Assembly: GCA_011109175.1 (NCBI GenBank)
Contig: RDEW01000001.1
Coordinates: 322,395 to 386,394, forward strand
Reading direction: 5' to 3'
Length of the DNA: 64,000 nucleotides
Origin: Dicyema japonicum
Lineage: Eukaryota; Animalia; Dicyemida
In this document: positions 28,108 to 57,859 of the stretch, one piece after another
Position numbering within the stretch: position 1 is the stretch's first letter
Layout: every line of letters starts with the position of its first letter
The notes under the pieces: model-generated
Database searches by the model: none
Told to the model about the DNA's origin: nothing
The model's input: the letters and a program-made list of their open reading frames with translations, nothing else
Translations under genes and position numbers: made by a program

Positions 28108-28929
28108 ATGAAACTAATGACAAGTTATAGCCAAATTATAGTGATTCTGATATATATAATATTCTCTACAAAAATGAGTACTGAAGTCACCGGATATAAA
28201 AAAAGCGATTGCCCTGTCCCTACATGGCTAGTTCCAATAAAGTCTAATGATCAGACCTTCTCCGTCTTATTTCAGGGAATTGTAAATTTGACTTATTCTG
28301 ATCCAAATAAAGGAGTATTAAATGTTATAAACCAAGTTGCGTGAAATTAATTTGAATGATTCTACGATTATATCTGGGAAGAATATCGACTTTCCGCATT
28401 ATTATATATCTTTATTATCAGGCAAAAACGGAATTGAATTAGAATTCAATTTTATTAATGGGGTGTCATTATAAAATATTTTGCGATCATTATCGATAGT
28501 AATATGATATTTTGAGCTAAGATAATTTGGATTCCTGATATTAATCATTATTATAATATAGCATTGAAGAATACTCATTTTAACTGTCCTAACTTGTTGA
28601 TAAAATTTGGCCCGGATTATAAAGCGAAAATTTATCATATGAAGTTTCAAATTTTTGATGGAAAAAATGGCACAAGTTTTTATGGAAGAAGTTAAATTTA
28701 TTAATAATCATTAGAATCAACGTGTGATCCCTCGATACCTATAAATAAAGTAGTTTATCCACTGAATGGTAAAATTATAATTTATTTTATAGAAACTGAT
28801 TGTACAAATAAAACTATAGTTAAAAGTAAATATAATTTTATTTCTATAGGTCCTAATGTTGATAGTTCTATAAAACGTACAATATTGGGTAAATTAATGA
28901 TTTTCCTTGTGGGAATATTAGCTATATAA
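28108..28929 (+). CDS. LAMP-like surface protein copy A: one domain, GPI-signal-like C-terminus, apparent frameshifts near 28470-28530
   Basis: Signal MTSYSQIIVILIYIIFSTKMS. With 22-24 bp introns removed it reads SDCPVPTWLVPIKSNDQTFSVLFQGIVNLTYSD...THFNCPNLLI..KFQIFDGKNGTSFYGRKSTCDP...NVDSSIKRTILGKLMIFLVGILAI*. Confidence 0.75.
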
Positions 28930-34917: not shown

Positions 34918-35771
34918 GCAGTTAAAAACTAAATATTAAATTTTTTCCATTAATTACTTTAATAGAGAAGGAACTCTTATCTAATGTTGAGAATGAAGTT
35001 TTGTCCATTTCTTCAATAAGAAAGTTCAAAACGTAGCTATCGAAATACGCTCTATAAATCATCCAGTCACACGTGGGTTATTGGTGGCCCTTTAGATCAT
35101 TGAGCTAATCTAACGGAGTTGATCGTCAGCTTGTAGTCCAAGGATTCCTGACGTCTCAATGAGACAAACAAGTGATCTTCCTAAATGTTTCGATACTTCC
35201 TTCTCTTAAGACCCTCGGTTTGAACAGAAGCATGACCTGGCCAAATAATTCTATGGAAGTTGGAAGAGAGAACTGATAAGTACTGCAGCAAAACCAAAAA
35301 GTTGGGCACCTTCTTAGGGGACCACAAAGATAGTCAATAGAAAACACTTGCAAATGCAACTTTACAAAAGTTTACAATGTAAAACATATATGTTAATGAT
35401 TGAATAACTAATATTTTGGAAAAAATATCCGATTTGTAAAATCGGATTAGAATTTTAAAACGTATCAAAAAATTTCAAACTATGAGACATTTTTGTTGGA
35501 AGAAACTAAAGTCTTATGTTTAATACTCTGTTTAAAATCACCCCAATTCGACAGGTAACACAGAGTATATTATCAATGTAATATTTAGTATTACGATTAT
35601 ATTAAATATTTAAATTTTCATATAAATTCATTAAAAAAGTTTAAATATCATAATTATATGAGAAAAAAATTAATTTTTATTAAATTTAAACAAAATTGTA
35701 AAAACCAAATTTTATTAATTTAAACATAAATATAATAAATATAAAAGATTAAGTTATTATCAATAAAATTA

Positions 35772-38025
35772 ATGACAAGTTATAGCCAAATTATAGTGAT
35801 TTTGATATATACAAAAATGAGTAATGAAGTCACCGGATATAAAAAGAGCGATTACTCCGTCCCAACATGGCTAGTTCCAATAAAATCTAATGATCAGACC
35901 TTTTCTATCTTATTTCAGGGAATCATAAATTTGACATATTTTGATCGAAATCAAAACGTATTAAATATTATAAACAAAGTTTCGTGAAGTTAATCTGAAT
36001 GATTCTACGATTCAATTTGGGAAGAATACTGACTCTCCACAATATTATATATATTTGTTATCAAGAGGAAACGGAATTGAATTAGATTTCGATGTTATTA
36101 ATGGAGAAGTTAATATAATAAAATTCGTGATCATTAACTATAGTAAAATGATAATTTAATCTAAGATGTGGGGTTTAATGATATTAATAAGTATTCGAAT
36201 AAAGCATTGAAGAATACTTACTTGGACTGTCCTAACTTGTTGATACAATCTGGCACAAAATATAAGGCGAAAATTTATCATATGAAATTTCAAATTTTTA
36301 ATGGAAAAAATGGCACAAGTTTTTATGGAAAAAGTTAAATTTATTATAAAAATTAGAATCAACGTGTGATCCCACGATACCTGAAAATGAAAAAGTTAAT
36401 CGACTGAATGGTAAAATTATAATTCATTTTTTAGAAAATGATCGTACAACTAAAACTACAAGTAAAATATAATTTTATTCCTTTATATCCTAATGCTGAC
36501 AGTTCTAAGGAAATAAGTATAGAAGTCACCGGATATAAAAAAAGCGATTACCCCGTACCAACATGGCTAGTTCCAATAAAATCTAATGATCAGACCTTTT
36601 CTGTTTTATTTCAAGGAATCGTAAATTTGACATATTTTGATTCAAATCAAAACGTATTAAATATTATAAACAAAGTTTCGTGAAGTTAATCTGAATGATT
36701 CTACGATTCAATTTGGGAAGAATACTGACTCTCCACAATATTATATATATTTGTTATCAAGAGGAAACGGAATTGAATTAGATTTCGATGTTATAAATGG
36801 AGAAGTTAATATAATAAAATTCGTGATCATTAACTATTGTAAAATGATAATTTAATCTAAGATATTGGGTTTAATGATACTAATAAGTATTCGAATAAAG
36901 CATTAAAGAATAGTTACTTGGACTGTCCTAACTTGTTGATACAATCTGGCACGCATAAGGCGAAAATTTATTATATGAAATTTCAAATTTTTAATGGAAA
37001 AAATGGCACAAGTTTTTATGGAAAAAGTTAAATTTATCATAAAAATTAGAATCAACGTGTGATCCCTCGATACCTAAAATGAAAAAGTTAATCGACCGAA
37101 TGGTAAAATTATAATTCATTTTTAGAAAATGATGGTATAACTAAAACTACAAGTAAAATATAATTTTATTCCTTTAGGTCCTAATGCTGACAGTTCTAAG
37201 GAAATAAGTATAAAAGTCACCGGATATAAAAAAAGCGATAACCCCGTACCAACATGGCTAGTTCCAATAAAATCTAATGATCAGACCTTTTCTATCTTAT
37301 TTCAGGGAATCATAAATTTGACATATTTTGATTCGAATCAAAACGTATTAAATATTATAAACAAAGTTTCGTGAAGTTAATCTGAATGATTCTACGATTC
37401 AATTTGGGAAGAATACTGACTCTCCACAATATTATATATATTTGTTATCAAGAGGAAACGGAATTGAATTAGATTTCGATGTTATTAATGGAGAAGTTAA
37501 TATAATAAAATTCGTGATCATTAACTATAGTAAAATGATAATTTAATCTAAGATATTGGGTTTAATGATACTAATAAGTATTCGAATAAAGCATTAAAGA
37601 ATAGTTACTTGGACTGTCCTAACTTGTTGATACAATCTGGCACGCATAAGGCGAAAATTTATCATATGAAATTTCAAATTTTTAATGGAAAAAATGGCAC
37701 AAGTTTTTCTGGAAAAAGTTAAATTTATTATAAAAATTAGAATCAACGTGTGATCCCACGATACCTAAAAATGAAAAAGTTAATCCACTGAATGGTAAAA
37801 TATAATTCATTTTATAGAAAATGATCGTACAACAAAACTACAAGTCAAAGTAAAAAATAATTTTATTTTTTTGGTCCTAATGTTCATAGTTCTAATGGAC
37901 AAAATATTGGTATTTCTGAAGAACCAAATGTTGATAGTTTAAAGAGGCTAAAGGTTGATAGTTCTTTAAAACGTACAATTTCGAGTAAATTAATGATTTT
38001 CCTGCTGGGAATATTAGTTATTTAA
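35772..38025 (+). CDS. LAMP-like surface protein copy B: three tandem domains
   Basis: Units start at ~35826, 36522 and 37213. Unit-1 introns are at 35958-35979, 36143-36165, 36334-36356 and 36411-36434. Each unit carries TYLDCPNLLIQSG..KFQIFNGKNGTSF[YS]GKKSTCDP. Some acceptors or frames are damaged (near 36487, 37075, 37870). Confidence 0.8.
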
Positions 38026-38209
38026 TTATAATTTGGGATTCTGTTATTTTTTGGAGTTGTTATTTTATTTGTTATTTACTATTTACACAACAGACTAGAT
38101 ATCTCAATCCATCTAAACATCTAGATCGATTCTCTTCAAGAATTACCAAAAATGAGTGCATTCCTTCATGAATCAATTCACTAATCATTGATGACGAATA
38201 TTAAAGCAG

Positions 38210-38470
38210 GGAATAGTTACCAGAGCTCTGGAATGCTCTTGACTTCTTTTTTCTAATGTTAGGTGTTATATACCATCCGGATCCAATGACAAGTAATCAC
38301 TGATGAGGCGTAACTCATAGATGGAACCTTCAGCCGGGATCTACAGCAGCGACATTCGATCAGGGGCCATCAGTCATTTGCCCCGCTCTTATGACAATGC
38401 ACGATATTATTATGTCGCGTCTCACCCGGGCTACCCATCACATGTTACTCGTCAATAAATCTGATTCCTG
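38210..38470 (-). mobile_element. R2-like RLE fragment (copies at ~48720-48960 and ~54360-54590)
   Basis: ETRHNNIVH motif; otherwise degraded. Confidence 0.35.
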
Positions 38471-39047
38471 TCATTCATCAATATTAAAAAGTTTCTAATC
38501 AATTATCGTTTCGCTAAAAAATAAATTTATTTTTTTATGTTTATATTTTTACTTAATTTATGTTGATTATTCTGAATTATCTTAATCTGTTACAATCTGT
38601 TCAGCTTTAGCAATGGATTAAACCAATAATTTTTTAAAACTCGTACCTCAAATTATTCACAAAAAATAGCTCATTCCCAATTAAAAAATCATATTTGATT
38701 GATGAACATTTTTTTTGATCATCCGCTTAAAATATGTTGAATAAATTCAGTTCAAAATGATCTGCATATTAGTTTTCTAGAATACTTAATTAAAAATTAC
38801 CTAAAGCATTTGAAATTTGTTCCAATATTCTGTAATGTTAGTGGAAAACATCATCCGAAGTCTCTTTTATGAAATATATAAACTTTTATACTCATGAATG
38901 ACTGTGTTTATCCCAGAAACTCTTCTTAGTTTATAAAAGGTGTTTCATTCGTAGAGGAATGAATAGAGCTTCGTTTAAAATTTGTTTCAGTTTTTAATGT
39001 ATTCCTCAGCCATTAAATTTGAAAGATAAATTTTAATTAAACCTTTA

Positions 39048-39185
39048 TATAATAATAACAGTCTTTTCACGAGAGCCATAATATTTATAGCTCTGCATAG
39101 GCAGGACACACAATTTATTTAAGTAACGAACAGTTAATTTTAACTAATCGTAGAACCAAGGAATGACCTTCATTTCTTTTTTTCT
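39048..39185 (-). repeat. RTE-like LINE 3' end repeat, copy 4
   Basis: aataataa..cttttcacgagagccata...aaccaaggaatg. Confidence 0.8.
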
Positions 39186-39539
39186 TACGGACAATGGATA
39201 ACTCGTCATGCAGAAAGTTAGCATTTATAATCTTCTGCATATTTACTTACAACCTGAGACTTGAAAAGTAAGGGGGAGATAACGATTTACAGAGTGTCGA
39301 AAATAGAGGAGTCTCCCTGATCGTCCCATATTCTAGGTATCATATACAGTTCAACTGCCCAATAGAAAAGCGCCCAAAATATAGAGATTAAAATAATTTA
39401 TCCATTTTTTCAATACTATTTTTTAGTAATTTATTAAACAACATGTTAATAAATAAAAAAGCCATTTGATTTATTAATTAAAATAAAACAGGTTCAAGAT
39501 ATCTTACGTTTTCTAACCGGATTTTCTTGGGAAAAAGTC

Positions 39540-39990
39540 TTCGACCAAGCTCGTCGCGAATGGTGTGCCGAAGGGCTGCATCCGGTTTCGTGCAAAAAGA
39601 GTGAGAACAGAGCACCCCGCTACGTTGTTATGAACAACATTGTCATGCGTGCTCTTGAAGCTGCAGACTTCCCGGTAGTGCTGGAGCCCGTAGGTTTGGA
39701 CGGCGGAGACGGGGAAAGACCAAATGGGCTAACAATCTTTCCGTTCACTGAAAGAAAATCGCTATTATGTGACTGCACTGTTGTGGGTTCTTTTTCCAAC
39801 TTGATGATGCTCAGCTCGTTGCAGTCTGCTGGATCGGCAGCCGATTTGGCCAAGAAAACCAAGATTAAAAATATGGCGTAATTGGAGATCGCTTTCGATT
39901 TATACCGGTGGTAACCGAAACGTCTAATGCTGCGGGAAGTATTACAGCCTTTTTCGTGAAGTAAATTGGTGTGAAATTGGCCCATTGTAA
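39540..39990 (+). mobile_element. CRE-like RLE domain fragment
   Basis: NNIVMRALEAADFPVVLEPVGLDGGDGERPNGLTIFPF..LCDCTVV..AGSAADLAKKTK. Confidence 0.9.
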
Positions 39991-40029
39991 GAACCGTTAA
40001 ACAGCTATATAATATCTAAGAAATTTTCT

Positions 40030-40650
40030 ATCCAGAAGACAATCCCACTTCCGCAGTGATGAACACAGATGACAGGGTTACCCGTTAACCTCAAAGCATC
40101 TTGGAATTTTCAACCGAACTCGAGACCTCCGGAACTTATTACACCGTGCAACTCTTAAACACTATATCTGGAAAATACGGAATTCACGTGCTAGACTTCT
40201 CTCTCTTAATGTTCTATGTCAGGATGTTCTCTAGTCGGGATACTTGACATCATAGAACCACTTCAGGTTGCAAGATGTTCCCCACAAATGTGACCACTGA
40301 AGACTACTTTGTTCGGACGCTCGACGTTTCCCTGGTAAATAAGAACAACAAACCGACTGACCTTGAAAAACAATTTTAAGAAATTGGAGTCGCCTCAGGG
40401 ACAGGTCACTAAAATCTTTGTTGAATCCGAAATTGCCTTGCATGAGGAAGACCTTACAAGACTTTTTGAGGGAATCTGATATTTTCTTACTTCCCCTACA
40501 CTCACCGGTAAAGTGAAGAAAGTTTATGCCGAAGACAACTTGAAAGAACTACTGCCCAAGGTTTTACTTAAATTGACTATAAAACTGAAAAATTGTGTTT
40601 TGAATGACGAAATCGATATTCAAGGACCAAGACAAAGAGAAAAATTTTAA
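40030..40650 (+). pseudogene. Unidentified degenerate intronless ORF
   Basis: About 200 codons of near-open frame with 4-5 stops and one shift; about 40% GC. Confidence 0.3.
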
Positions 40651-41050
40651 TTAAACCGTGAATCCACTCGAATTGATTCTATCAGAAACGGAAGTTGGCT
40701 TGATGCTGTCGATTATTATTTTAAAAATTTTATTGAAGTAAAGAGATAATTTTGATAAATATGGAATTTTAATCAAGTCCGTCAGAATACGGACAAGTTT
40801 ATCAGCGATATTGTACAATATTAGCAGGAGAAATCCAGTCACCATGAAAGACGCTAAAATAGATTCCAAAATGATATTTCAGTAACGATTTATTGGAATC
40901 AAGCAAATCCATCCAGAACCAGCATAAAAGGTAAAAGACGTCCATTCCTTGCAGTTGTAGGAACCTTACTAGTTGAGTGAGGGAAAATAAATGATGCTAT
41001 GTGTGCCATCCTGCCACTGGGGGACACTTGAGATAGGTGGATCACATGAC
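40651..41050 (-). mobile_element. Non-LTR RT fragment, same family as 13660-13790
   Basis: HLFSLTQLVRFLQLQGMDVFYLL..DLLDSNKSLL..HGDWISP/LILYNIADKLVRIL. Confidence 0.5.
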
Positions 41051-41879
41051 TCCTCTCTATTAAAAAGGGAAGAGAAGAGTAGAACGAAAAAACAGAAATC
41101 TTCAATCAACTAGGCACATGACACTACACTAACGTCAGCACCACGGAGATTTATCCTTCAACAATTGATTTTGTAAGGGAAAAGGTATTCGAAAAAGTGG
41201 CTGTTCCTTTTGAGAAATTTTAAATTTGAAAACGTTTTTATTTTTTTATTTTAATAATATTTTTATTTCTTCTTAATATTATTTAAAAGTCTTCCTACTT
41301 ATGAGGTACGATTCATTTTGCTTAATAACCGTAACCTGATCAACAGATATTGGTTAGCATACATGCGACGAGCAGTACATGCGAGATTCACAAAATACAA
41401 AAAAATTTTCTTAATAAAACTTTAATTGGAAAAAATTATTAATAATATTAAAATTACATATAGTACATATTTTTATTTAAAATATTAATTATAAAACATG
41501 TATCTAGTGAATCCCACACGTGATACCTTGGAAAAATTAGGATCTACTGTGCTACTGGTAAGATCGATAATTGCCCTGACTAGAGAGAAGGAGTTAAAGT
41601 TAAAATAAAAGAATTCATTTTAAAAGATTTGAAACCTTACATATAAAAATGGTATAGAACTGAGATACTTTGTGTTCATATTCAGGCATCAAATACAGTA
41701 ATTTTAGTCAACACGATTGCTTGCAACTAAACCTGAAATTACACCAATGATTGCTTATGCTCCAAGAGATCGGTAAATAGTAAATCTTGTTGATTTACGT
41801 AGATATTCTTCTCAAAATGAAAACTATTCTTGGGTAATTTGTTTGCAATATTTTTATCAGCAAGAGTTATGCGATAAAT

Positions 41880-42470
41880 TTGCCATTTCGCATGTTACAT
41901 GACGTCCACGAGATCATTGGATACAAAGACAAGTACACCGGTTTTCGCTTTTTTTATCAATAGATTTAACCAATCAATTAAAAGATGGGATTCTTCCACG
42001 AGTTCATCCAAGGGAAATTTCAAAGACATTGTACGGATTATAAAGACCTTCATACAACAAGACAGCGGCCTTTTGAGATTTTTTACAACGTCAATCTGGA
42101 GAAAAAATGGATCAGGAAAAAATAGAATCGTTGATAAATTTTGCCGGTAGGGTGAAAGAGCCAATAGAATTTTCATCCTTGAATAATTTAGAAGAAAAAC
42201 GAAAAATTGCTCTTGAAAATATAAAGTCAGGTGAAAAGGTAAAAAAACGCCGAAGATTGAAATACGATGAACTCAATTCAGGAGACGAAATTTTATTACG
42301 TCATGATGGGGGTGCCAATGAGGGTAATAGGCGCTATATGACGATGATTCTGCAAACAAGTACCAAGATGTAAGAAAGGAGAACTGATAACTATTGTTGA
42401 CCAGGACGAAGAAAATAATGAACATAACACTGTTCATATTAGTGGAGTATAAAAATTGTGACCCTTGAAA
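41880..42470 (+). mobile_element. Gypsy-like integrase C-terminal relic
   Basis: HTTRQRPFEIFY; RKIALENIK..LNSGDEILLR..TVHISGV. Confidence 0.5.
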
Positions 42471-42653
42471 TTTTTTACGATGTGTGCTTTTTAAATTGGA
42501 TCACTTTTTTTGATTACTAACATTACCTGGGATAGGGCTAGAGTTAGGGTTGATTTAAAATAGATTAGCTTGACAGATTGTAATTTTAAATCTTTATGTT
42601 AGAAATTAAAAAAATGATTAAATTTTTGAGATAAAATTAGTATGGCTAACTAA

Positions 42654-42880
42654 TACGAAGCACTACGCGACCGATTCGCGTTTTATCCGATTGTGGTCGA
42701 GACAACTGGAGGAATAAGTGGAAAATCGCTTCGCTACCTAAAAAACTTGGACGCTTAGCTACATTAAAAAGCCACGACGCACGTGAGATCCGGTGGCTTC
42801 TCCAGTTGATCTCTGTTGCAATCGTGAGGGTCAACGCAACGTCGATAATGTTGGCGAGGTTAACTTTGGATAGCAGTGTT
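42654..42880 (+). mobile_element. CRE-like RLE C-terminus
   Basis: YEALRDRFAFYPIVVETTGG..LRYL / KLGR..REIRWLLQLISVAIVRVNATSI. Confidence 0.88.
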
Positions 42881-44499
42881 AAATGAAAAAATAAATTTAT
42901 GTTGGTTAAATAAAGTTTGGTTATTGTAATAAAATTTGCAAAAATTAGTTATTTATTTTAATTTGTAGGTAATTCCCATTCGATTGTAGAGAGTGAGAGC
43001 TATTCGCCCGTGTTTAGATTCAGGCGTTCACGAAATTTTACAAAAAGCTAATTCAAATATACTGGATTTTTATTTGAAATGGACTTTTTTTAAAATTGAA
43101 TGAAGTTTCATAGGCATTACAAAAAGGATTATATTAATTAATTTAATTGATTGTCAAAGAATTATTAATACGCTCATTAAAAAAGTTGAATTTTTTTTTC
43201 AATTTAGCTCGGAACCAACAAGTCTCTCGCAGATCGTTGCTCACAGCTTGAATCATGGAGCCGATTATTTTTCATAAAAGATTTAGCTTGATAAAAAAAT
43301 TTGGACTCTAGATTTTTATGATGATACTTTTGATGACAACAATTCAAAAATTTACCAATTTCACTTAAAATCTTTGGCCCGAGATTTTAAAAAAATGAAT
43401 AATTACCCCCAATTCATTGTATATTTCGGTTACAAATTTTGGGGTAACTCCATTATTCTACACAAATAATAAAAATAAACATCAATCTGATTACTTCATA
43501 AGTCCCCTTATGTGATTACTTCAGAAATTCATTAGGTTACACCTACCTCAATTAGAAGTTGTCAATCTGGAGTAAATATCCCCTATGACCATAAGTAAAT
43601 TTAATTAACCCCCACCAATACAACTTTAATAGCGTTGCATATGATCCTTTACATCACAAACCATCGGGTTAATTTTATCATCCTTTACAGCTACTAGCGT
43701 ATGGTGGAAACCTTGGGTGAACATCGGATTCCTACTACACCTCCGAAGGAACCAAAAAGCAACAAGATCACGTGGATCTCGATATCAATCACTAAAATTC
43801 AATATTTTGAATCGCCTCACATTCATGAATCCCACCAGAATCGTTCAATAACTCGATATAGCCTTGGGTTAGATTTCCCCCACTGGCTTCTTTGTCAGGG
43901 TTTCTCTACCTTTCTTTGTGTCTTCTCTTTCCTTGTTCATATAGAGTAGAGTGATGAGATCTATAATTCTCTGGTGGCGCCCAGTGCCAGGGTAGCACGA
44001 CAATTGATCATTTGCTTGGGTTCACACGACTGCAAAAACTGAACACCACCTTCCCTTCCTCTCTTCTGGATAGAGTTGTGTGTGATCCTTATATACCAGT
44101 TTGTGAAGTCTACGATGTAGCATGCATGTACCTTTTGTGCTTACGGAATTTCAATTTAAGATTCAACAGGATAAATTCCTAAGAACAAAAATCGTCCTCA
44201 TAACCAATTCTCTGTTCAGTTTTCCCTCCCATTACTCGACAACGCGGCAATCCGGAGTAATCGTTCCGGCTTCATCACTTTTTGTGGCTTTATGTCTGTC
44301 GCTTCTACCAATCAGCGATAGAAGCGTACAATTAAATTTGGTAAAAAAACTCACACCTTTCCAAATTCTCATGAAAGAGGAACGTCGTAGATTCAGGAAA
44401 GCTATGGGTACTGGAGGAGCACAGCGCAAAAAGTCACTTACTTCCATCTCCAGTCGCTCCTTTGCTGTCAATAAAAGTCTGTACCACAGCTCTTTCACC

Positions 44500-44880
44500 T
44501 TGTCAGGAATTTTTTTTCAATGATGATCAAAAATAAACCTGATGGGCTCTGATTTGACATCAAAGACCTCAAACATGTTTTTTACTGTTTTAACTTTGAA
44601 AAAAACGTTCACAACTAACAATTGAGTAGCCAACTGTGAGTTATGAACGAATGCAAAGTTGGAAAAACATTTTAGCCAGTTCAACTTTTGAAGCCATAAA
44701 ATCCTTCGCAATTCTGTTTCTACTTCGGAAAAGAGAGTCAACGATTTCTTCGTAGAAAATAGATGAGTTCATGTCAGTCTCAAAATAACTACCAAAATTC
44801 TGACATTTTCGGTTCAAGGTTTCCAAATGTTCCTTGTTTTCAACATCAATTGAATCCAGCCTTAACAAAACGAAAGCTTG
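44500..44880 (-). mobile_element. hAT transposase C-terminal relic (ZMYM1-like)
   Basis: FETDMNSSIFYEEI... followed by a decayed IVSCERFF dimerization motif. Confidence 0.55.
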
Positions 44881-45179
44881 TCAGGGAACCTACGAACCCG
44901 GAATGTGCGTTCTAAAAGTTAGACCTTCAGTCTGTGTCCGAATTTAATTTATTAAGAAAAAAAGAGAGTGAATGGTCAATAGCGGCCGACTGGAGATGGA
45001 AGTAAGTGACTGCGTGGCTATTTCCCCTCAAGAGATTCGCTCAAATAACCAGGAGCGCTCATGGGTGTCTCCTGATCGTGTAGAAATTCGATTCCTGAGA
45101 CGACTCAAGAATTCCAGCGTCGCAGGCTTAAGGGAACCAGATGTCTTAAGGGAGTGTAACGAACAAAAAATAATTGGGT

Positions 45180-45480
45180 AGGGCCGCGTACTTTACCCTT
45201 TCAATCCCTCGGCCTTCTCAGCGGCAGAACAGGCTCCAGAGGCATTCTGTAGTAAGTTGTCGATGGAGGTGACGTCAAGAGGATTTCCGGCTTCAAAAGG
45301 AAAGGTTATCATTCCAATCTGGTCGTTTTCCGTCACGCCTACAAAGACAGACTGGTTCGAGCATGGAGCGGTATCCGACGGCGTCCAAAGATAACCTAAC
45401 GACTTTGTTCATGGTCATGTGACTGAAAAATCTGCTTGCACTCTTCAGTCTTAATGAGGTCCTCAGATTTAAGGTCAATA
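45180..45480 (-). mobile_element. CRE-like RLE fragment (duplicate at 52160-52490)
   Basis: MNKVVRLSLDAVGYRSMLEPV.LCRRDGKRPD..FPFEAGKPLDVT..SAAEKAE. Confidence 0.88.
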
Positions 45481-46269
45481 ATTCTATCGAGCCTATCTAA
45501 AACTAAATATTAACTTTTTTTCATTAATTACTTCAATAGAGAGGGAACTCTTATCTAATGTTGAGAATGAAGTTTTGTATATTTCTTCAATAAGAAAGTT
45601 CAAAACGTAGCTATCGAAATACGCTCTATAAATCATCCAGTCACACGTGGATTATTGGTGGCCCTTTAGATCATTGAGCTAATCTAACGGAGTTGATCGT
45701 CAGCTTGTAGTCCAAGGATTTCTGACGTCTCAATGAGACAAACAAGTGATCTTCCTAAATGTTTCGATACTTCCTTCTCTTAAGACCCTCGGTTTGAACA
45801 GAAGCATGACCTGGCCAAATAATTCTATGGAAGTTGGAAGAGAGAACTGATAAGTACTGCAGCAAAACCAAATTGTTGGGCACCTTCTTAGGGGACCACA
45901 AAGATAGTAAATAGAAAACAATTGCAAATGCAACTTTACAAAAGTTTACAATGTAAAACATATATGTTAATGATTGAATAACTAATATTTTGGGAAAATT
46001 ATCGGATTTGTTAAATCGGATTAGAATTTTTAAAATCACCCCAATTCGATAGGTAACACAATGTATATTATCAATGTAATATTTAGTATTACGATTATTT
46101 TGAATATTTTAATTTTCATATAAATTCATTAAAAAGTTTAAATATCATAATTATATGAGAAAAAAATTAATTTTTATTAAATTTAAACAAAATTGTAAAA
46201 ACCAAATTTTACTAATTGAAACATAAAATATAATAAATATAAAAGATTAAGTTATTATCAATAAAATTA

Positions 46270-48521
46270 ATGACAAGTTATAGCCAAATTATAGTGATTT
46301 TGATATATACAAAAATGAGTAAAGAAGTCACCGGATATAAAAAGAGCGATTACTCCGTCCCAACATGGCTAGTTCCAATAAAATCTAATGATCAGACCTT
46401 TTCTATCTTATTTCAGGGAATCGTAAATTTGACATATTTTGATTCAAATCAAAACGTATTAAATATTATAAACAAAGTTTCGTGAAGTTAATCTGAATGA
46501 TTCTACGATTCATTATGGGAAGAAAACTGACTCTCCACAATATTATATATATTTGTTATCAAGAGGAAACGGAATTGAATTAGATTTCGATGTTATAAAT
46601 GGAGAAGTTAATATAATAAAATTCGTGATAATTAACTATTGTAAAATGATAATTTAATCTAAGATATGGGGTTTAATGATATTAATAAGTATTCGAATAA
46701 AGCATTGAAGAATACTTACTTGGACTGTCCTAACTTGTTGATACAATCTGGCACAAAATATAAAGCGAAAATTTATCATATGCAATTTCAAATTTTTAAT
46801 GGAAAAAATGGCACAAGTTTTTATGGAAAAAGTTAAATTTATCATAAAAATAGAATCAACGTGTGATCCCACGATACCTAAAATGAAATAGTTAATCGAC
46901 CGAATGGTAAAATTATAATTCATTTTTAGAAAATGATGGTATAACTAAAACTACAAGTAAAATATAATTTTATTCCTTTAGTCCTAATGCTGACAGTTCT
47001 AAGGAAATAAGTATAGAAGTCACCGGATATAAAAAAAGCGATTGCCCAGTACCAACATGGCTAGTTCCAATAAAATCTAATGATCAGACCTTTTCTGTTT
47101 TATTTCAAGGAATCGTAAATTTGACATATTTTGATTCAAATCAAAACGTATTAAATATTATAAACAAAGTTTCATGAAGTTAATCTAAATGATTCTACGA
47201 TTCAATTTGGGAAGAATACTGACTCTCCACAATATTATATATATTTGTTATCAAGAGGAAACGGAATTGAATTAGATTTCGATGTTATAAATGGAGAAGT
47301 TAATATAATAAAATTCGTGATCATTAACTATAGTAAAATGATAATTTAATCTAAGATATTGGGTTTAATGATACTAATAAGTATTCGAATAAAGCATTAA
47401 AGAATAGTTACTTGGACTGTCCTAACTTGTTGATACAATCTGGCACGCATAAGGCGAAAATTTATCATATGAAATTTCAAATTTTTAATGGAAAAAATGG
47501 CACAAGTTTTTCTGGAAAAAGTTAAATTTATCATAAAAATTAGAATCAACGTGTGATCCCACGATACCTAAAAATGAAAAAGTTAATCGACTGAATGGTA
47601 AAATATAATTCATTTTTTAGAAAATGATCGTACAACTAAAACTACAAGTAAAATATAATTTTATTCCTTTAGATCCTAATGCTGACAGTTCTAAGGAAAT
47701 AAGTATAGAAGTCACCGGATATAAAAAAAGCGATTACCCCGTACCAACATGGCTAGTTCCAATAAAATCTAATGATCAGACCTTTTCTGTTTTATTTCAA
47801 GGAATAGTAAATTTGACATATTTTGATTCAAATCAAAACGTATTAAATATTATAAACAAAGTTTCGTGAAGTTAATCTGAATGATTCTACGATTCAATTT
47901 GGGAAGAATACTGACTCTCCACAATATTATATATATTTGTTATCAAGAGGAAACGGAATTGAATTAGATTTCGATGTTATTAATGGAGAAGTTAATATAA
48001 TAAAATTCGTGATCATTAACTATAGTAAAATTATAATTTAATCTAAGATATTGGGTTTAATGATACTAATAAGTATTCGAATAAAGCATTAAAGAATAGT
48101 TACTTGGACTGTCCTAACTTGTTGATACAATCTGGCACGCATAAGGCGAAAATTTATCATATGAAATTTCAAATTTTTAATGGAAAAAATGGCACAAGTT
48201 TTTATGGAAAAAGTTAAATTTATTATAAAAATTAGAATCAACGTGTGATCCCTCGATACCTAAAAATGAAAAAGTTAATCCACTGAATGGTAAAATATAA
48301 TTCATTTTATAGAAAATGATCGTACAACTAAAACTACAAGTCAAAGTAAAAAATAATTTTATTTTTTTGGTCCTAATGTTCATAGTTCTAATGGACAAAA
48401 TATTGGTATTTCTGAAGAACCAAATGTTGATAGTTTAAAGAGGCTAAAGGTTGATAGTTCTTTAAAACGTACAATTTTGGGTAAATTAATGATTTTCCTG
48501 CTGGGAATATTAGTTATTTAA
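46270..48521 (+). CDS. LAMP-like surface protein copy C: three tandem domains
   Basis: Units start at ~46324, 47016 and 47708 (692-bp period) with the same micro-introns. Terminal DSSLKRTILGKLMIFLLGILVI*. There is a -1 homopolymer shift near 46880 and the last acceptor near 48370 lacks AG. Confidence 0.8.
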
Positions 48522-49539
48522 TTATAATTTGGGATTCTGTTATTTTTTGGAGTTGTTTTCTGATTTGTTATTTATTATTTACACTACAGACTGGAAATCT
48601 CAATCCATCTAAACATTTAGATCGATTCTCTGTAAGAATTACCAAAAATGAGTGCATTCATTCATGAATCAATTCATTAATCATTGATGACCAATATTAA
48701 GGCAGGGAATATTTACCAGAGTTCTGGAATGCTCTTGACTTCTTTTTTCTAATGTTAGGTGTTATATACCATCCGGATCCAATGACAAGTAATTACTGAT
48801 GAGGCGTCACTCATAGATGGAACCTTCAGCCGAGATCTACAGCAGCGACATTCCATCAGAGACCATCAGTCATTTGACCCGCTCTTATGTCAATGTACGA
48901 TATAATTATGTCGCGTCTCACCTGCGCTACCAATCATATTTTACTCGTCAATAAATCTGATACCTTCATTCATCAATATTAATAAGTTTCTAATCAAAAA
49001 TCGTTTCGATAAAAAATAAATTTATTTTTTTATGTTTTTATTTTTACTTAATTTATGTTGATTATTTTGAATTATCTTAATCTGTTACAATCTGTTCAGC
49101 TTTAGCAATGGATTAAACCCATAATTTTTTAAAACTCGTACCTTAAATTATTCACAAAAAATAGCTCATTCCCAATTGAAAAATCATATTTGATTGATGA
49201 ACATTTTTTTTGTTCATCTGCTTAAAATATGTTGAATAAATTCAGTTCAAAATGATCTGCATATTAGTTTTCTAGAATACTTAATCAAAAATTACCTGAA
49301 GCATTTGAAATTTGTTCCAATATCCTGTAATGTTAGTGGAAAACATCATCCGAAGTCTCTTTTATGAAATATATAAACTTTTATACTCATGAATGACTGT
49401 GATTATCCCAGAAACTCCTCTTAGTTTATAAAGGGTGTTTCATTCGTAGAGGAATGAATAGAGCTTCGTTTAAAATTTGTTTCAGTTTTTAGTGGATTCA
49501 TCAGCCATTAAATTTGAAAGATAAAGTTTGATTAAACCT

Positions 49540-49822
49540 TTATAAAATAATAACGGCCTTTTCACGAGAGCCATAATATTTATAGCTCCGCATAGGCAGG
49601 ACACACAATTTATTTAAGACAACTCGCAGGACACACAACTCGCATAGGCAGGACACACATTTTATTTAAGTAAAGAACAGTTAATTTTAACTAATCGTAG
49701 AACCAAGGAATGACCTTCACTTCTTTTTTTCTTTTTTTTGAGTGTGGTCTTTTCTAGAAAAATGAGTTCCGCAGTGAGTATCCACTGATGACGGCGTCAC
49801 TCGTCAAATTCCTTCTGCATCG
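49540..49822 (-). repeat. RTE-like LINE 3' end repeat, copy 5, with internal micro-duplications
   Basis: gcaggacacaca is repeated three times at 49595-49660. Confidence 0.8.
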
Positions 49823-50309
49823 TAGATGCGTGGAACTTTCTACCAAGTGAAGTGCAGCGAGAATCGAAATTGTAACTATGATACTAGGTTTATCTAAATA
49901 AACTTTTACATGATCCTCTGAAAAAATAAAATATAATTTCATTACTTCTGATTGCGGATGATCTGATCTTTACAAATATGTCTGATTGATTTTTCACAGA
50001 ATGGGATAAGGTATTTAGTTTTAAACTCTTTTCCTTTTTCTGTTTTGATCTCACAAAAGCCGATTACAAAACAAGTTGTTTCGAATACTTTGCAAATATT
50101 TATTTCACTTAAGGTCTGCATGGATTGTTTATTAGGTTTTTTGGCAATCACGTGGTATTTAGAATCGGAAACACGTCAATCCAAGAATTCTAAAATCACT
50201 ACGAGAATAGAATAGTCAATTCTAAAAATCTAGGCTAAAATTGATCACATTACTCGTTACGTGACCACGTCGCTCAATATATTTTATGTCTTCACAGTTA
50301 TCGCTAATT

Positions 50310-50830
50310 TTGTATTTTTGTAATGTTGGAGAATCTTACAAATGAAATAGAAGGTATCACTAACATGGTTTTCAACAACAATGGTTATCAAACATATCGC
50401 TAAAAATCTTGATGTTCCACTAAAAACAGTCTATCGGATGATAGCGGAATTCAATAATATGGAAAAATTTATAAAAACCTGAAGAAAACGCAAAAAACAT
50501 ATACGACGAAAATTCTCTTTATAAGAGAAAGGTTGAATGAAGAATACGATATTTCATGTTCGAGACTTTCTAATGAAATATTTCAAAATGGAAAAAAATA
50601 AGGGATTTAATGATGCGAGTCTCCAAACAATTGAAGTGTTGACTATGAATCGTTTAATATTAAAAAGATTAATGGAATCGGTAAATTAATTTATTTTTTT
50701 CTCAAATATGGTGTTAGGTTGTTTTTTGAAAATTTCTGGATAATCTGATAGATTCTCTCTTTAGTGTTGAAATTTCGGATTGATGTGATGAAGTGATGTA
50801 AAAGTGTTCTTAATTAGACTTGAACACCCG
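50310..50830 (+). mobile_element. Deleted Tc1/mariner element (duplicate at ~56070-56589)
   Basis: HIAKNLDVPLKTVYRMIAEF HTH. Right end ttgaacacccg|TA. Confidence 0.55.
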
Positions 50831-50979
50831 TATATGCCCGATACGAGTACAGACTATAAAAACCACATTAAACAGGTCATCAGGCACCTAATCACCTCAT
50901 AAAAATGATTGATTGACAGGTGACATGTAGCCTATTAAAGTAGTCAAAATGTTTTCCAAATTTCATTTTTTTTTGATGT

Positions 50980-51430
50980 ACTTGAGATCAGCATCAAGTA
51001 TCCATGTAAATGTGATCCTTGGTTGATCCAGTCCAACAAAGTACTCCTCCATCGCTATATACGCTGGGGTATCCAATTCCGATCTCAATATATGTCCAGA
51101 AAGCCTTCATCTAAAATCAGTGATCGAAGAGTCAAAGGATCAGTGGAAGCAAACATTACATAAATTTTTTTTGTCTATTTTCTTAGGCTAATTCAGTCCA
51201 CCATTGTCCTGAGCAGCCTTCAATGAATCTATCCCATGTTACTCAGCCCTGGACATTGTCCACGTTGATGAATTATTTTTAACATTTTTTTCAGCGCAGC
51301 AGTAGCAGGGGTATTTCCGAGCGATATCCTCACTTTCTCTAGGACCCAAGTTTATTGGTCTTCTTCCATGGTTCATCCGATCTTTTTTCTGTTTATATGA
51401 TATCAACTGCTTCCGTTTTGTAAACATTCA
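50980..51430 (-). mobile_element. RTE-like C-terminal fragments (duplicate at ~56730-57150)
   Basis: RLSGHILRSELDTPAYIAMEEYF..PRIT; STWT..AAQD. Confidence 0.6.
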
Positions 51431-53296
51431 TTGTTAGGTGAATGAAAACTGATCTATCCCTCGATATGAAGTCGACGTCGTCATCATAAATGGATCCTCC
51501 TAATTCCCCTTCATAACATTTTCGAAGGTGACGTAGCGCCGTCTCCATGTATATGACAAACATCAAAAGGAAAGAGGGAGTCTCCTTGAGGAGAAACTTT
51601 TTTTCACTTTTGGAGTTACAAGAAGTGGTCTATAGAGAGAAAGAACATGACGCCAACACCCTTGGAGATCCTAATAGGAAAGAAAACAGAGGAGACCGAC
51701 AACAACAAACTTGTGTAGAATCAGCGGAGGAATACACTAAGCCAAGCTGAGGGCATGGAGTAAATTTGTCAGCATCACTTAGTTTATTTATTTCGGTTTA
51801 ATGGTGGTCTTTGAACTGTTTCTCCCTTATTTTCAGTTTTCATTAATGCCTTTAAATTTATGTTTTTACTCATTAAAACTTTCAACCCTCTCACCAAAGC
51901 ATGTCGTTACAAGGCAGTATAACATAGGTAGACCAACGGTGATGAATCTAGCGATTTGCATTCCATGGATACTTCTCCAGAAATCGTACCCTACAACAGA
52001 TACAACTACTAACTGCATCTGATGATTGGTTTTATCGATTATTAGAAATTATCGTTCATTCTATGATCAGTGTATTTTAATACTTTAAACAACTGACTAA
52101 ATTTTCTATTTTGGAGGGACGAGGAACCAGTTGACCTATCAGTACTTGCGTGGAATTGGTAGGGCCGCGTACTTTACCCTTTCAATCCCTCGGCCTTCTC
52201 AGCGGCAGAACAGGCTCCAGAGGCATTCTGTAGTAAGTTGTCGATGGAGGTGACGTCAAGAGGTTTTCCGGCTTCAAAAGGAAAGGTTATCATCCAATCT
52301 GGTCGTTTTCTGTCACGCCTACAAAGACCGACTGGTTCGAGCATGGAGCGGTATCCGACGGCGTCCAAAGATAACCTAACGACTTTGTTCATGGTCATGT
52401 GATTGAAAAATCTGCTTGCACTCTTCAGGTAGAAGTGAATTCTGCTTGCACTCTTCAGTCTTAATGAGGTCCTCAGATTTAAGGTCAATAATTCTATCGA
52501 GCCTATCTAAAACTAAATATTAACTTTTTTTCATTAATTACTTCAATAGAGAGGGAACTCTTATCTAATGTTGAGAATGAATTTTTGTATATTTCTTCAA
52601 TAAATAGATCAAAACATAGTTATCGAAATACGCTATCTAAATCATCCAGTCAAACGTGGATTATTTGTGGCCCTTTAGATCTTTGAGCAAATCTAACGGA
52701 GTTGATCGTCAGCTTGTAGTCCAAGGATTCCTGACGTCTAATGAGACAAACAAATGATCTTCCTAAATGTTTCGATACTTCCTTCTCTTAAGACCCTCGG
52801 TTTGAACAGAAGCATGACCTGGCCAAATAATTCTATGGAAGTTGAAAAAGAGAACTGATAAGTACTGCAGCAAAACCAAATTGTTGGGCACCTTCTTAGG
52901 GGACCACAAAGATAGTCAATAGAAAACACTTGCAAATGCAACTTTACAAAAGTGTAATGTAAAACATATATGTTAATGATTGAATAACTAATATTTTGGG
53001 AAAAAAATACCGGATTTGTTAAATCGGATTAGAATTTTAAATCGTCCAATGCTCTGTTTAAAATCACCCCAATTCGATAGGTAACACAATGTATATTATC
53101 AATGTAATATTTAGTATTACGATTATTTTGAATATTTTAATTTTCATATAAATTCATTAAAAAGTTTAAATATCATAATTATATGAGAAAAAATTAATTT
53201 TTATTAAATTTAAACAAAATTGTAAAAACCAAATTTTACTAATTGAAACATAAAATATAATAAATATAAAAGATTAAGTTATTATCAATAAAATTA

Positions 53297-54164
53297 ATGA
53301 CAATTTATAGCCAAATTATAGTGATTTTGATATATACAAAAATGAGTAAAGAAGTCACCGGATATAAAAAGAGCGATTACTCCGTCCCAACATGGCTAGT
53401 TCCAATAAAATCTACTGATCAGACCTTTTCTGTCTTATTTCAGGGAATCGTAAATTTGACATATTTTGATCCAAATCAAAATGTATTAAATATTATAAAC
53501 AAAGTTTCGTGAAGTTAATCTGAATGATTCTACGATTCATTATGGGAAGAAAATTGACTCTCCACAATATTATATATATTTGTTTTCAAGAGGAATCGGA
53601 ATTGAATTAGATTTCGATGTTATTAATGGAGAAGTAAATATAATAAAATTCGTGATCATTAACTATAGTAAAATGATAATTTAATCTAAGATGATGTGTT
53701 TCCTGATACTAATAAGTATTCGAATAAAGCATCGAAGAATACTTACTTGGACTGTCCTAACTTGTTGAATACAATCTGGCACAAAATATAAGGCGAAAAT
53801 TTATCATATGAAATTTCAAATTTTTAATGGAAAAAATGGCACTAGTTTTTATGGAAAAAGTTAAATTTATTATAAAAAGTAGAATCAACGTGTGATCCCA
53901 CGATACCTAAAAATGAAAAAGTTAATCCACTGAATGGTAAAATTATAATTCATTTTATAGAAAATGATCGTACAACTAAAACTACAAGTAAAATATAATT
54001 TTATTTCTTTAGGTCCTAATGTTCATAGTTCTAATGGACAAAATATTGGTATTTCTGAAAGACAAAATGTTGATTGTTTTAAGAGGCTAAAGGTTGATAG
54101 TTCTTTAAAACGTACAATTTCGGGTAAATTAATGATTTTCCTGCTGGGAATATTAGTTATTTAA
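53297..54164 (+). CDS. LAMP-like surface protein copy D: one domain, intact final acceptor, GPI-signal-like end; +1 shift near 53768
   Basis: Same exon structure as the other copies. The last exon reads SPNVHSSNGQNIGISERQNVDCFKRLKVDSSLKRTISGKLMIFLLGILVI*. Confidence 0.78.
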
Positions 54165-55274
54165 TTATAATTTGGGATTCTGTTATTTTTTGGAGTTGTT
54201 ATTTGATTTGTTATTTATTATTTACACAACAGACTGGATATCTCAATCCATCTAAACATCTAGATCGATTCTCTTTAAGAATTACCGAAAAATGAGTGCG
54301 ATTCCTTCATGAATCAATTCACTAATCATTGATGACGAATATTAAGGCAGGAAAAGTTACCAGAGTTCTGGAATGCTCTTGACTTCTTTTTTCTAATGTT
54401 AGGTGTTATATACCATCCGGATCCAATGACAAGTAATCACTGATGAGGCGTCACTCATAGATGGAACCTTCAGCCGGGATCTACAGCAGCGACATTCGAT
54501 CAGGGGCCATCAGTCATTTGCCCCGCTCTTATGACAATGCACGATATTATTATGTCGCGTCTCGCCCGCGCTACCCATCACATGTTACTCGTCAATGAAT
54601 CTGATTCCTTTCATTCATCAATATTAATAATTTCTAATCAATAATCGTTTCGATAAAAAATAAATTTATTTTTTTAAGTTTTTATTTTTTACATAATTTA
54701 TGTTGATTATTTTAAATTATCTTAATCTGTTACAACAATACAATATTAAATCCTAGTCGATTGTTCGACAAAATTTGAGTAATTTCACTTGGTTCTTCAT
54801 ACTCTAACGAGATGGTTGCAAGAGATTCAAATCTGTTCAGCTTAAGCAATGGATTAGACCCATATTTTTTTAAAACTCGTACCTTAAATTATTCACAAAA
54901 AAATAAATAAAAATCATATTTGATTGATGAACATTCTTTTTTTGTTCATCCGTTTAAAATATGTTGAATAAATTCAGTTCAAAATGATCTGCATATTAAT
55001 TTTTTAGAATACTTAATTAAAAATTACCTAAAGCATTTGAAATATGTTCCAATATCCTGTGATGTTAGTGGAAAACATCATCCGAAGTCTCTTTTATGAA
55101 ATATATAAACTTTTATACTCATGAATGACTGTGTTTATCCCAGAAACTCCTCTTATTTTATAAAGCGTGTTTCATTCGTAGAGGAATGAATAGAGCTTCG
55201 TTTAAAATTTTTTTTCAGTTTTAGTGGATTCATCAGCCATTAAATTTGAAAGATAAAGTTTGATTAAACCTTTA

Positions 55275-55452
55275 TATAATAATAACGGCCTTTTCACGAG
55301 AGCCATAATATTTATAGCTCCGCATAGGAAGGACACACAATTATATAAGTAAAGAACAGTTAATTTTAACTAATCGTAGAACCAAGGAATGACCTTCACT
55401 TCTTTTTTTCTTGTGTGTGGTCTTTTCTAGACAATCCAGTTCCGCAGTGAGG
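55275..55452 (-). repeat. RTE-like LINE 3' end repeat, copy 6
   Basis: Same ~120-bp core and aataataa tail. Confidence 0.8.
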
Positions 55453-57859
55453 CGTAAAACCTTCCACCAAATGAACTGCAACGAGAATCAAAATTGTAAC
55501 TATGATACTAGGTTTATATAAATAAACTTTTGCATGATCCTCTGAAAAAATAAAATATTATTTCATTACTTCTGATTGAGGATGATCTGATCTTTACAAA
55601 TATGTCTGATTGATTTTTCACAGAATGGGTTAAGGTATTTAGTTTTAGTTTTAAACTCTGTTCCTTTTTCTGTTTTGATCTCACAAAAGCGATTTCAAAA
55701 CAAATTGTTTCGCATGCTTTACAAATATCTAATTCACTTGAAGTCTGCTTGGATTGTTTATTAGGTTTTTGGCAATCACGTGGATTTAGAATCGGAAACC
55801 TATAAGTTATCGATGTTTTTTACAAAGCCTATTATTAAATAGAGAGATAAACATTTTAGATAGCACGTGTCGAATATTTAAAAACAACGCTAAAAATATT
55901 CAAGACTCTGAGAAATGCGTCAGGTCAATCCAAGAATTCTTACATCACTGCGAGGATAGTCACATCATTCCGAGAAATTCTAAAATCGAGGCTAAATTGA
56001 TCACATTACTTGTCACGTGACGTCGCTCAATATATTATATATCTTACAGTTATCGCTAATTTGTTTATTTTTGTAATGTTGGAGAATCTTACAAATGAAA
56101 TAGAAGGTATCACTAACATGGTTTTCAACAACAATGGTTATCAAACATATCGCTAAAAATCTTGATGTTCCACTAAAAACAGTCTATCGGATCATAGCGG
56201 AATTCATTAATATGGAAAAATTTCTAAAAACCTGAAGAAAATGCAAAAAACATATACGACGAAATTTCTGACTTTATAAGAGAAAGGTTGAATGAAGAAT
56301 ACGATATTTCACGTTCGAGACCTTCTAATGAAATATTTCAAAATGGAAAAAAATAAGGGATTTAATGATGCGAGTCTCCAAACAATTGGAAGTGTTGACT
56401 ATGAATCGTTTAATATTAAAAAGATTAATGGAATCGGTAAATTAATTTATTTTTTTCTCAAAAGTATAGCGTTGTTTTTTTGAAAATTTCTGGATTAATG
56501 TGATAGATTCTCTCTTGTTGAGTGTTGAAATTTTCGGATTGATGTGATGAAGTGATGTGAAAGTGTTCTCAATTAGACTTGAACACCCGTATATACCCGA
56601 TACGAGTACAGACTATAAAAACTTCATTAAACAGGTCATCAGGCACCTAATCACCTCATAACAATGATTGATTGACAGGTGACATGTAGCCTATTCAAGT
56701 CGTCCAAATGTTTCAAATTTCATTTTTCTTTTGATGTACTTGAGATCAGCATCAAATATCCATGTAAACGTGATCCTTGGTTGATCCAGTCCAACAAAGT
56801 ACTCCTCCATCGCTATATACTATGGGGTATCCAATTCCGATCTCAATATATGTCCAGAAAGCCTTCATCTAAAATCAGTGATCGGGAGAGTCAAGGGATC
56901 AGTAAAGCAAACATTACATAAATTTTTTTTGTCTATTTTCTTAGGCTAATTCAGTCCACCATTGTCCTGAGCTTCCTTCAATGAATCTATCCCCTGTTAC
57001 TCAGCCCTGGACATTGTCCACGTTGGTGAATTATTTTTAACATTTTTTTCAGCGCAGCAGTAGCAGGGGTAATTCTCCGAGCGATATCATGGTTCATCCG
57101 ATTTTTTTTCCGTTTATATGATATCAACTGCTTTCGTTTTGTAAACATTCATTGTTAGGTGAATAAAACTGACCTATCCCTCGATATGAAGTAGACGTCG
57201 TCATCATAAATGGATCCTCATAATTTCCCTTCATAACATTTTCGAAGGTGACGTAGAGCCATTTCCATGTATATGACAAACATCACAGGAAAGAGGGAGT
57301 CACCTTGAGGAGAAACTTTTGGAGTTACAAGAAGTGGTCTATAGAGAGAAAGAGCATGACGTCAACACCCTTGGAGATCCTAATAGGAAAGAAAACCGAC
57401 AACAACAAACTTGTATAGAATCACCGGAGGAACACTAAGCCAAGCTGAGGGCATGGAGTAAATTTGTCAGCATCACTTAGTTTATTTATTTCGGTTTAAT
57501 GGTGGTCTTTGAACTGTTTCCCCCTTTTTTCAGTTTTCACATTAATGCCTTTGAAAATTATGTTTTTACTCATTAAAACTTTTAACCCTCTCACCAAAGC
57601 ATGTCGTTACAAGGTAGTATAACATAGGTAGACTCAACAGGTGATGAATCTAGCGATTTGCATTCCATGGATACTTCTCCAGAAATCCTCCCCTTCAACA
57701 GATACAACTACTAACTGCATCTGATGATTGGTTTTATCGATTATTAGAAATTATCGTTTATTCTATGATCAGTGTATTTTAATACTTTAAACAACTGACT
57801 AAATGTTCTATTTTGGAGGGACGAGGAACCAGTTGACCTATCCGTACTTGCGTGGACTC

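Follow-up and report, generated by a model that had tools for sequence, protein, structure and literature searches.

Do tandem genes that carry different numbers of the same module form a working series of protein lengths, or do they record a past duplication whose products are now decaying? The question is raised by a gene cluster of Dicyema japonicum, an octopus parasite, on a 64-kb stretch of contig RDEW01000001.1 (assembly GCA_011109175.1, positions 322,395 to 386,394 of the forward strand). This stretch, hereafter the window, is AT-rich and contains no N. Its four tandem paralogues, A, B, C and D, hold one, three, three and one copies, respectively, of a ~692-bp module (eight copies). An initial annotation of positions 35772-48521, which run from the B start codon to the C stop codon, had described this series as in-frame exon cassettes and had proposed that unequal crossing-over tunes the length of a surface protein. 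Our analyses support recombination as the origin of the array and do not bear out the tuning. Specifically, the reading that we favor, to which we assign a probability of about 0.6, is that the array is real and that the local genes are now decaying duplicates rather than a working length series.

Gene and unit structure

The units were found by repeat finding and then aligned, and the conserved GT..AG segments within them were located. Repeat finding and alignment confirmed the domain number 1/3/3/1 of the initial annotation, with units at 28.1 kb (A), 35.8, 36.5 and 37.2 kb (B), 46.3, 47.0 and 47.7 kb (C) and 53.3 kb (D), as well as its start-to-start periods of 696 and 691 bp in B and 692 and 692 bp in C. 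Each unit contains five exons, namely exon a (186 nt when it includes the start codon, 167 nt in internal units), exon b (163 nt), exon c (165-168 nt) and the small linker exons d (54 nt) and e (27 nt), and five GT..AG mini-introns of 22, 23, 23, 23-24 and 25 nt. For D. japonicum, a mean intron length of 38 bp (PMC6736024) and introns shorter than 30 bp (PMC13644364) are on record. Intron 1 is in phase 0 and introns 2-5 are in phase 1; both borders of the unit are phase 1, linker exons d and e are symmetric (phase 1-1), and the intact coding design amounts to 576 nt (167+163+165+54+27). When GT..AG segments (21-27 nt) at the same positions were removed from two diverged paralogues located elsewhere on the same scaffold, L011 and L013, uninterrupted open reading frames (ORFs) of 235 and 227 codons were obtained. 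These ORFs support the exon model independently. L011 and L013 lie 7 kb apart in the same orientation and have introns 1-4 as in the window genes, without intron 5.

The encoded product consists of a hydrophobic, signal-like N-terminus, a ~165-amino-acid (aa) domain encoded by exons a-d, a short linker and the tail exon. By inspection, the hydrophobic core right after the start comprises 7 residues in B, C and D and 11 in A, L011 and L013, and all tails contain 11 hydrophobic residues (..LMIFLLGILVI-stop) preceded by S/G-rich, small polar residues. We read this tail, from its composition, as resembling a glycosylphosphatidylinositol (GPI) signal, and the product looks like a putative surface protein, either secreted or GPI-anchored.

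Self-comparison of the window places B, C and D on three tandem blocks (Table 1) with a basic period of ~5.6 kb, to which the two extra cassettes add 1384 bp. The offsets between blocks C and D are 7009-7028 upstream and 5643 downstream of the array, and the difference of 1384 bp corresponds to two cassettes. Block identities are 96.7% for B-C, 93.5% for C-D and 84% for A versus the others. The earlier statement that adjacent blocks differ mainly by two cassettes thus applies to C and D but not to B and C, which both carry three units and differ farther downstream, where B has a segment of ~6 kb (39200-45170) and C one of ~2.5 kb (49.6-52.15 kb), as does D (55.4-57.9 kb). Short ORFs on both strands of the block B segment gave no Pfam match.

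Could the arrays have been expanded from a shorter one during assembly, or could B and C be two haplotypes of one locus set in tandem? The D. japonicum assembly (67.5 Mb in 377 scaffolds; Lu et al. 2019, PMC6736024) is a hybrid Platanus-plus-Falcon build that used PacBio RS II reads and HaploMerger, the sample behind it was pooled, with a heterozygosity of 1.24%, and the units differ from each other by 1.5-4%, a range close to the divergence of haplotypes. In addition, a 97% identical partial copy on C348 stops at a 1324-N gap inside the first cassette, indicating that the locus troubled the assembler. However, there is no N in the window itself, and the PacBio reads behind the assembly easily bridge a 2-kb array. 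Moreover, the units are individually distinct, with first and internal types that are told apart by a 3-nt indel and with linkers of types X, Y and Z, and there are two separate arrays of three units each. B and C also take their places in a regular A-B-C-D block series, the 6-kb versus 2.5-kb segment sets them apart, and homopolymer lengths are stable across units. We therefore regard an assembly artifact as highly improbable.

Origin of the three-unit genes

Internal units open with a hybrid exon, which follows the beginning of the tail exon for ~26 nt (SPNxxSS..) and then continues as exon a from just upstream of the EVTGY codons. Because the same hybrid exon is present at all four internal junctions, it argues for one founding event. 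A tree built on the 5′ 420 nt groups all four internal units together (support 93/96), separately from B1, C1 and D1, which suggests that the third unit was derived from the second by homologous exchange. The cassettes are, in addition, mosaic. In a four-gamete test, 309 of 666 informative site pairs were incompatible, and the incompatibility clusters along the unit (p = 0.0002 in a permutation test similar to the pairwise homoplasy index). Only one difference in 230 nt separates B2 from C3, against a divergence of 3.1% between the B and C flanks, and the succession of linker types is X, Y, Z in B but Y, X, Z in C. Thus, the shared hybrid exon, the internal-unit clade and the mosaic cassettes lend good support to unequal or illegitimate recombination as the origin of the array, in agreement with the crossing-over invoked in the initial annotation.

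These data suggest a history of four steps. The hybrid exon indicates that one illegitimate exchange would have fused ~26 nt of the tail-exon start to exon a, duplicating 692 bp; this exchange would have doubled five exons and five mini-introns and produced a frame-keeping hybrid exon, with phase 1 at either border of the unit. The third unit was probably gained next, by homologous unequal exchange. The block identities show that the three-unit gene was subsequently copied along with its ~7-kb block to give B and C, and the mosaic test shows that segments were later swapped among the cassettes, within as well as between B and C. The 1/3/3/1 series is therefore best read as one past gain, made in the ancestral gene of B and C once it had separated from D, that the two youngest blocks, B and C, would have inherited. 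Recurrent adjustment of domain number is not needed, and the single gain is the simplest history in view of the single-unit outgroups (A, the C356 copies, L011 and L013), the block identities and the internal-unit clade.

Two other histories were considered and set aside. The swapped linker order could reflect two reciprocal unequal exchanges between two-unit ancestors, in which case B2 should resemble C3, as was found (1/230), and B3 should resemble C2, which it does not (11 of 230 nt differ). D could be a collapsed three-unit gene; it carries no trace of the hybrid exon, single-unit outgroups exist and one gain is more parsimonious, although the segment trees are also compatible with a collapse of D.

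Reading frames and selection

Frames were computed by projecting the five homologous introns onto each unit; the spliced, joined models served for this local frame bookkeeping only. Under homologous splicing all four window genes are interrupted, with first stops at codon 112 in A (111 aa), codon 387 in B, codon 185 in C and codon 150 in D, and L011 and L013 are open. The lesions involved are listed in Table 1. The initial annotation had cassettes joining through a phase-1 intron after ..TTKTT into EVTGY. This arrangement is present at the B2-B3 and C2-C3 junctions, where the phase-1 intron after ..TTKTT is followed by (S/D)PNADSSKEISI(E/K)VTGY and which are the only canonical in-frame junctions, but it is broken at B1-B2 by a TAT acceptor and at C1-C2 by a 1-nt deletion at the acceptor. 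Nor do the cassettes keep the frame as assembled: the internal coding lengths are 575 nt in B2, 581 nt in B3 (582 expected), 575 nt in C2 and 582 nt in C3, and only C3, whose length includes a 6-nt insertion, is in frame. Exon a′ of C2 has 166 nt rather than 167 nt. At B1-B2 an intron of 61 nt (36462-36522) would result from use of the next in-frame AG, 36 nt farther on; each affected internal exon has such an in-frame AG 36 nt into the exon. The last intron of B (37850-37873) is 24 nt long and its homologous acceptor ends in TG, and if the TG of the corresponding intron in C serves as acceptor, the C frame continues into the anchor exon. Hence, with canonical splicing at the homologous sites, neither B nor C as assembled can be translated through to the anchor. 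When splice choices were left unconstrained and the best ORF was sought, B and C were open only with 16-19 introns, several of which cut conserved coding sequence, and this search was discarded as over-fitting.

We take the B and C lesions to be real DNA changes because B2 and C1 have both the exon-d deletion and substitutions linked to it in common, TAT arose at the acceptor by substitution and the window is low in indel noise. B and C differ by 51 substitutions and 6 one-nt indels, a neutral-like ratio, and of the 13 homopolymer runs of at least 4 nt in exons a-c, 12 are of equal length throughout the seven B/C/D units, the exception being an in-frame 3-nt indel. Assembly indel noise as the cause of the frameshifts was thus not supported, either for the shared exon-d deletion or for the window in general.

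The pattern of substitution is suggestive of relaxed constraint on the B/C/D units, as would be expected of decay. Variable sites among these units are distributed over the three codon positions as 14/18/20 and make up 9.7% of exon and 12.8% of intron sites, and the ratio of nonsynonymous to synonymous substitution rates (dN/dS) is ~1 for both B1-C1 and B1-D1. The proposed tuning of surface-protein length is not supported, since one inherited gain suffices, the three-unit genes cannot be translated canonically to the anchor and the apparently intact relatives that were found are single-domain.

Several observations weigh against decay as we favor it. None of the eight units and four tail exons has acquired a nonsense substitution in its homology frame; for the unit exons of B/C/D, 2.7 would be expected (P(0) = 0.07). 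The frame-breaking lesions of B and C all fall in the linker, which makes up ~12% of the unit; core exons a-c, with 71% of the unit, contain 1 of 8 one-nt indels (binomial p = 0.0009). Acceptor lesions affect 4 of 7 copies of intron 5 and 0 of 28 copies of introns 1-4 (Fisher p = 0.0007). Such clustering of lesions at the linkers and intron 5 is not expected from uniform neutral decay. Further, dN/dS between first-type and internal-type cassettes is 0.39-0.56, similar to the value of 0.43-0.48 found between subfamilies, so that the multi-domain gene was probably functional for a while. Open frames extend to the anchor, 594 aa long in B and 605 aa in C, once each gene is granted three non-homologous splice choices. 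Assembly error could account for the private frameshifts of A and D: two A-like copies on C356 differ by 14 one-nt indels versus 2 substitutions per ~1 kb, which looks like uncorrected long-read error in one copy and calls for caution with frameshift calls in this assembly. The apparently intact genes L011 and L013 also give a dN/dS as high as 0.74. On the other hand, B2 and C1 are only ~1% apart in their type-Y linker copies. A recent spread of the shared frameshift is therefore possible and would make decay compatible with intact core exons. Given that nonsense substitutions are absent and the lesions are confined to linkers, decay is either very recent or not the whole story.

The open ORFs raise the possibility that B and C are functional and encode anchored surface proteins of three domains, in which case unusual splicing would bypass the linker lesions and domain number would differ functionally among the paralogues. 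The three choices in each gene are a ~99-nt intron that skips the frameshifted exon d, a ~61-nt intron to the in-frame AG and a final GT..TG intron, and both products end in the anchor tail. All small linker exons are phase 1-1, so that skipping keeps the frame, and core exons a-c of the six B/C units contain neither frameshift nor nonsense, with the lesions clustered in the linkers. However, three ad hoc events are needed per gene, and the splice sites around exon d are intact, so that nothing favors skipping. Rescue is, moreover, near automatic given symmetric linker exons and no stops in the homology frames, making it weak evidence. The exon-a profile detected no transcript-derived family protein among 1.84 billion proteins, a blank that covers the intact paralogues too and hence says little, and the apparently intact relatives are all single-domain. 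We tentatively keep this possibility in view but consider it unlikely. Also unlikely is the more detailed proposal that B and C would be expressed via the TG acceptor, skipping of the symmetric 53-/26-nt linker exons and the downstream in-frame AG, yielding one- and three-domain anchored host-interface proteins. If the lesions were bypassed, the linkers would be dispensable and could decay freely.

Alternatively, B and C might now make a single-domain, anchorless (secreted) product, with translation stopping in or just after unit 1 and the downstream cassettes left as untranslated remnants. Indeed, unit 1 is complete and open through core exons a-c in both genes, the C frame ends at codon 185, within the C1 linker, and loss of the intron-5 AG in B would retain the intron and lead to a stop three codons after ..TTKTT. 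This scheme seems quite improbable: the downstream core exons show no decay, where ~1 nonsense substitution and 2-3 indels would be expected from the ~1% private divergence (a rough estimate), and the signal-like core of the B/C/D type is four residues shorter than that of A, L011 and L013.

Table 1. Coordinates of the genes, units, blocks, lesions and related copies (window positions unless a contig is named)
Feature	Position	Strand	Basis	Description
Gene A	28117..28929	+	alignment	one unit and short tail exon; ~84% identical to B-D
Gene B	35772..38025	+	alignment	three units and tail exon
B units	B1 35772-36486; B2 36487-37177; B3 37178-37873	+		
B tail exon	37874-38025	+		
Gene C	46270..48521	+	alignment	three units and tail exon
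C units	C1 46270-46981; C2 46982-47672; C3 47673-48369	+		
C tail exon	48370-48521	+		
Gene D	53297..54164	+	alignment	one unit and tail exon; five introns all canonical
Three tandem blocks with B, C, D	34925..57900	+	self-comparison	
B block	34925-45498	+	self-comparison	
C block	45499-52507	+	self-comparison	
D block	52508 to ~57900	+	self-comparison	
A exon b	28457-28474	+		private -1 within this interval; stop 28472-28474
B1-B2 junction	36480..36495	+		intron-5 acceptor TAT, not TAG
B2 linker exon d	37050..37102	+		53 nt versus 54; -1 at ..ATACCT-AAAATG.. (37070-37084)
B3 linker exon e to last intron	37818..37873	+		private -1 (37827-37841); 6-nt insertion common to C3
C1 linker exon d	46854..46906	+		53 nt; -1 as in B2 (46874-46888)
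C1-C2 junction	46975..46989	+		1-nt deletion at acceptor, TTTAG/TCC versus TTTAG/GTCC
C last intron	48346..48369	+		24 nt, GT..TG
D exon c	53761-53776	+		private +1, extra A within this interval; first stop codon 150
L011	L011:1426-2203; G000:C1 ~684 kb			apparently intact, single-domain, 235 aa
L013	L013:1426-2203; G000:C1 ~677 kb			apparently intact, single-domain, 227 aa
L009	G000:C356:232124-232795	-		A-like copy, start codon now ATA
L010	G000:C356:168385-169058			A-like copy, inverted relative to L009, start codon now ATA
L012 / L014	G000:C348:166096-167596			1.5-kb copy of B upstream region and exons a-b

The gene family and comparison with known systems

Domain and homology searches were run on single exon translations, one exon at a time. 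Searches of Pfam with six exon translations at E values up to 1 gave no match, a profile of exon a built from six family members retrieved only two spurious low-complexity repeat proteins from 1.84 billion representative proteins, and the ESM Atlas contained no look-alike of exon b scoring >0.9. By these exon-level searches, the family appears to be lineage-specific, with no detectable relatives outside the D. japonicum genome. Within that genome it is a small family, whose members are the window cluster, the inverted pair on C356, the apparently intact pair at 677/684 kb of G000:C1 and the C348 fragment. Every copy outside B and C has one unit, and the apparently intact relatives that were found are all single-domain. 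L011 and L013 share 55% protein identity with a dN/dS of 0.74, and the values between subfamilies are 0.43-0.48; judged from these comparisons, the family is evolving fast.

The C348 copy is 97% identical to window positions 33719-34277 plus 35080-35996, lacks 34278-35079 and ends at the 1324-N gap mentioned above. It may be a leftover haplotype fragment or an unresolved paralogue; a second full copy was rejected, as the piece is just 1.5 kb and adjoins a gap. Immediately before block B, a 95-bp repeat occurs twice in tandem (34671-34864), in a segment that the C348 copy lacks.

Cysteine content differs between the members. An exon-a Cys (..DC(P)..) is common to A, L011 and L013, and A has a further Cys in exon e. 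Both are substituted jointly in units of the B/C/D type, by Y or N in exon a and by R in exon e, and the Cys residues of exons c and d are kept (compare, for example, 35850-35856 in exon a and 36440-36446 in exon e with 28200-28206 and 28796-28804 in A). C2 alone among the B/C/D units has the exon-a Cys. From the alignment, the joint replacement looks like the concerted loss of one disulfide pair.

At 1004-2270 the window contains short ORFs that resemble exon a (..DCNP..PIW..) and end in a transmembrane-like helix instead of the hydrophobic tail. These seem to represent a more diverged subfamily, which both the genome DNA search and the exon-level protein searches with the family missed. Elsewhere in the window, two adjacent ORFs of 314 and 408 aa on the minus strand (61550-63717) both match the reverse transcriptase domain RVT_1 and appear to be a long interspersed nuclear element (LINE)-type element split by a frame break, and two 21-nt repeat arrays lie in opposite orientation at 6266-6406 and 6509-6645 (within 6266-6645).

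For annotation, the array carries a warning, in that three-domain models of B and C are not translatable by canonical splicing. The two genes also provide two concrete loci for the suspected use of TG acceptors in D. japonicum. The family is a candidate for the dicyemid parasite-host interface; a literature search on dicyemid host-interface proteins found no papers. More generally, the locus offers a clean, stepwise case of five-exon module duplication in an animal genome with 22-25-nt introns, and gives no evidence of a new mechanism.

The closest parallels are intragenic cassette duplications. The kringle-IV type 2 (KIV-2) array of LPA is made up of ~5.5-kb units of two exons each, which vary widely in number between individuals and are all translated. 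As in LPA, the Dicyema array places a multi-exon cassette head to tail with frame-keeping borders and one domain per unit, and it points to unequal homologous recombination. Unlike LPA, the Dicyema unit measures 692 bp and packs in five exons and five 22-25-nt introns, the count is three in both multi-unit paralogues of the one assembly, and the majority of units, as assembled, do not keep the frame. In the haptoglobin allele Hp2, which is expressed and polymorphic, the breakpoints lie in introns. The Dicyema genes resemble Hp2 in that one founding non-homologous unequal exchange would have doubled an in-frame internal exon block and so provided the substrate for later homologous exchange; they differ in that the breakpoints fall inside two exons and create a hybrid of tail-exon start and exon a.

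Extracellular modules of animal genes are typically phase 1-1, according to Patthy's exon-shuffling rule. The Dicyema unit and both of its small linker exons are likewise bounded by phase-1 introns, such that duplication or skipping preserves the frame. Unlike shuffled modules, however, it arose by duplication inside one gene, from a lineage-specific domain for which the exon-level searches found neither a Pfam match nor a relative in the set of 1.84 billion proteins. Like duplicated pseudogenes, the genes retain their introns and show private and shared frameshifts, splice-site changes and near-neutral recent substitutions; unlike them, they have no nonsense substitution, and the B/C lesions are confined to linkers. 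As LPA KIV-2 and Hp2 illustrate, this kind of event, intragenic duplication of a multi-exon cassette, is well known, and the cluster looks like ordinary gene-family churn rather than a proven length-tuning device. The novel elements relative to these systems are the gene family, its setting of tiny introns and a founding junction located inside exons.

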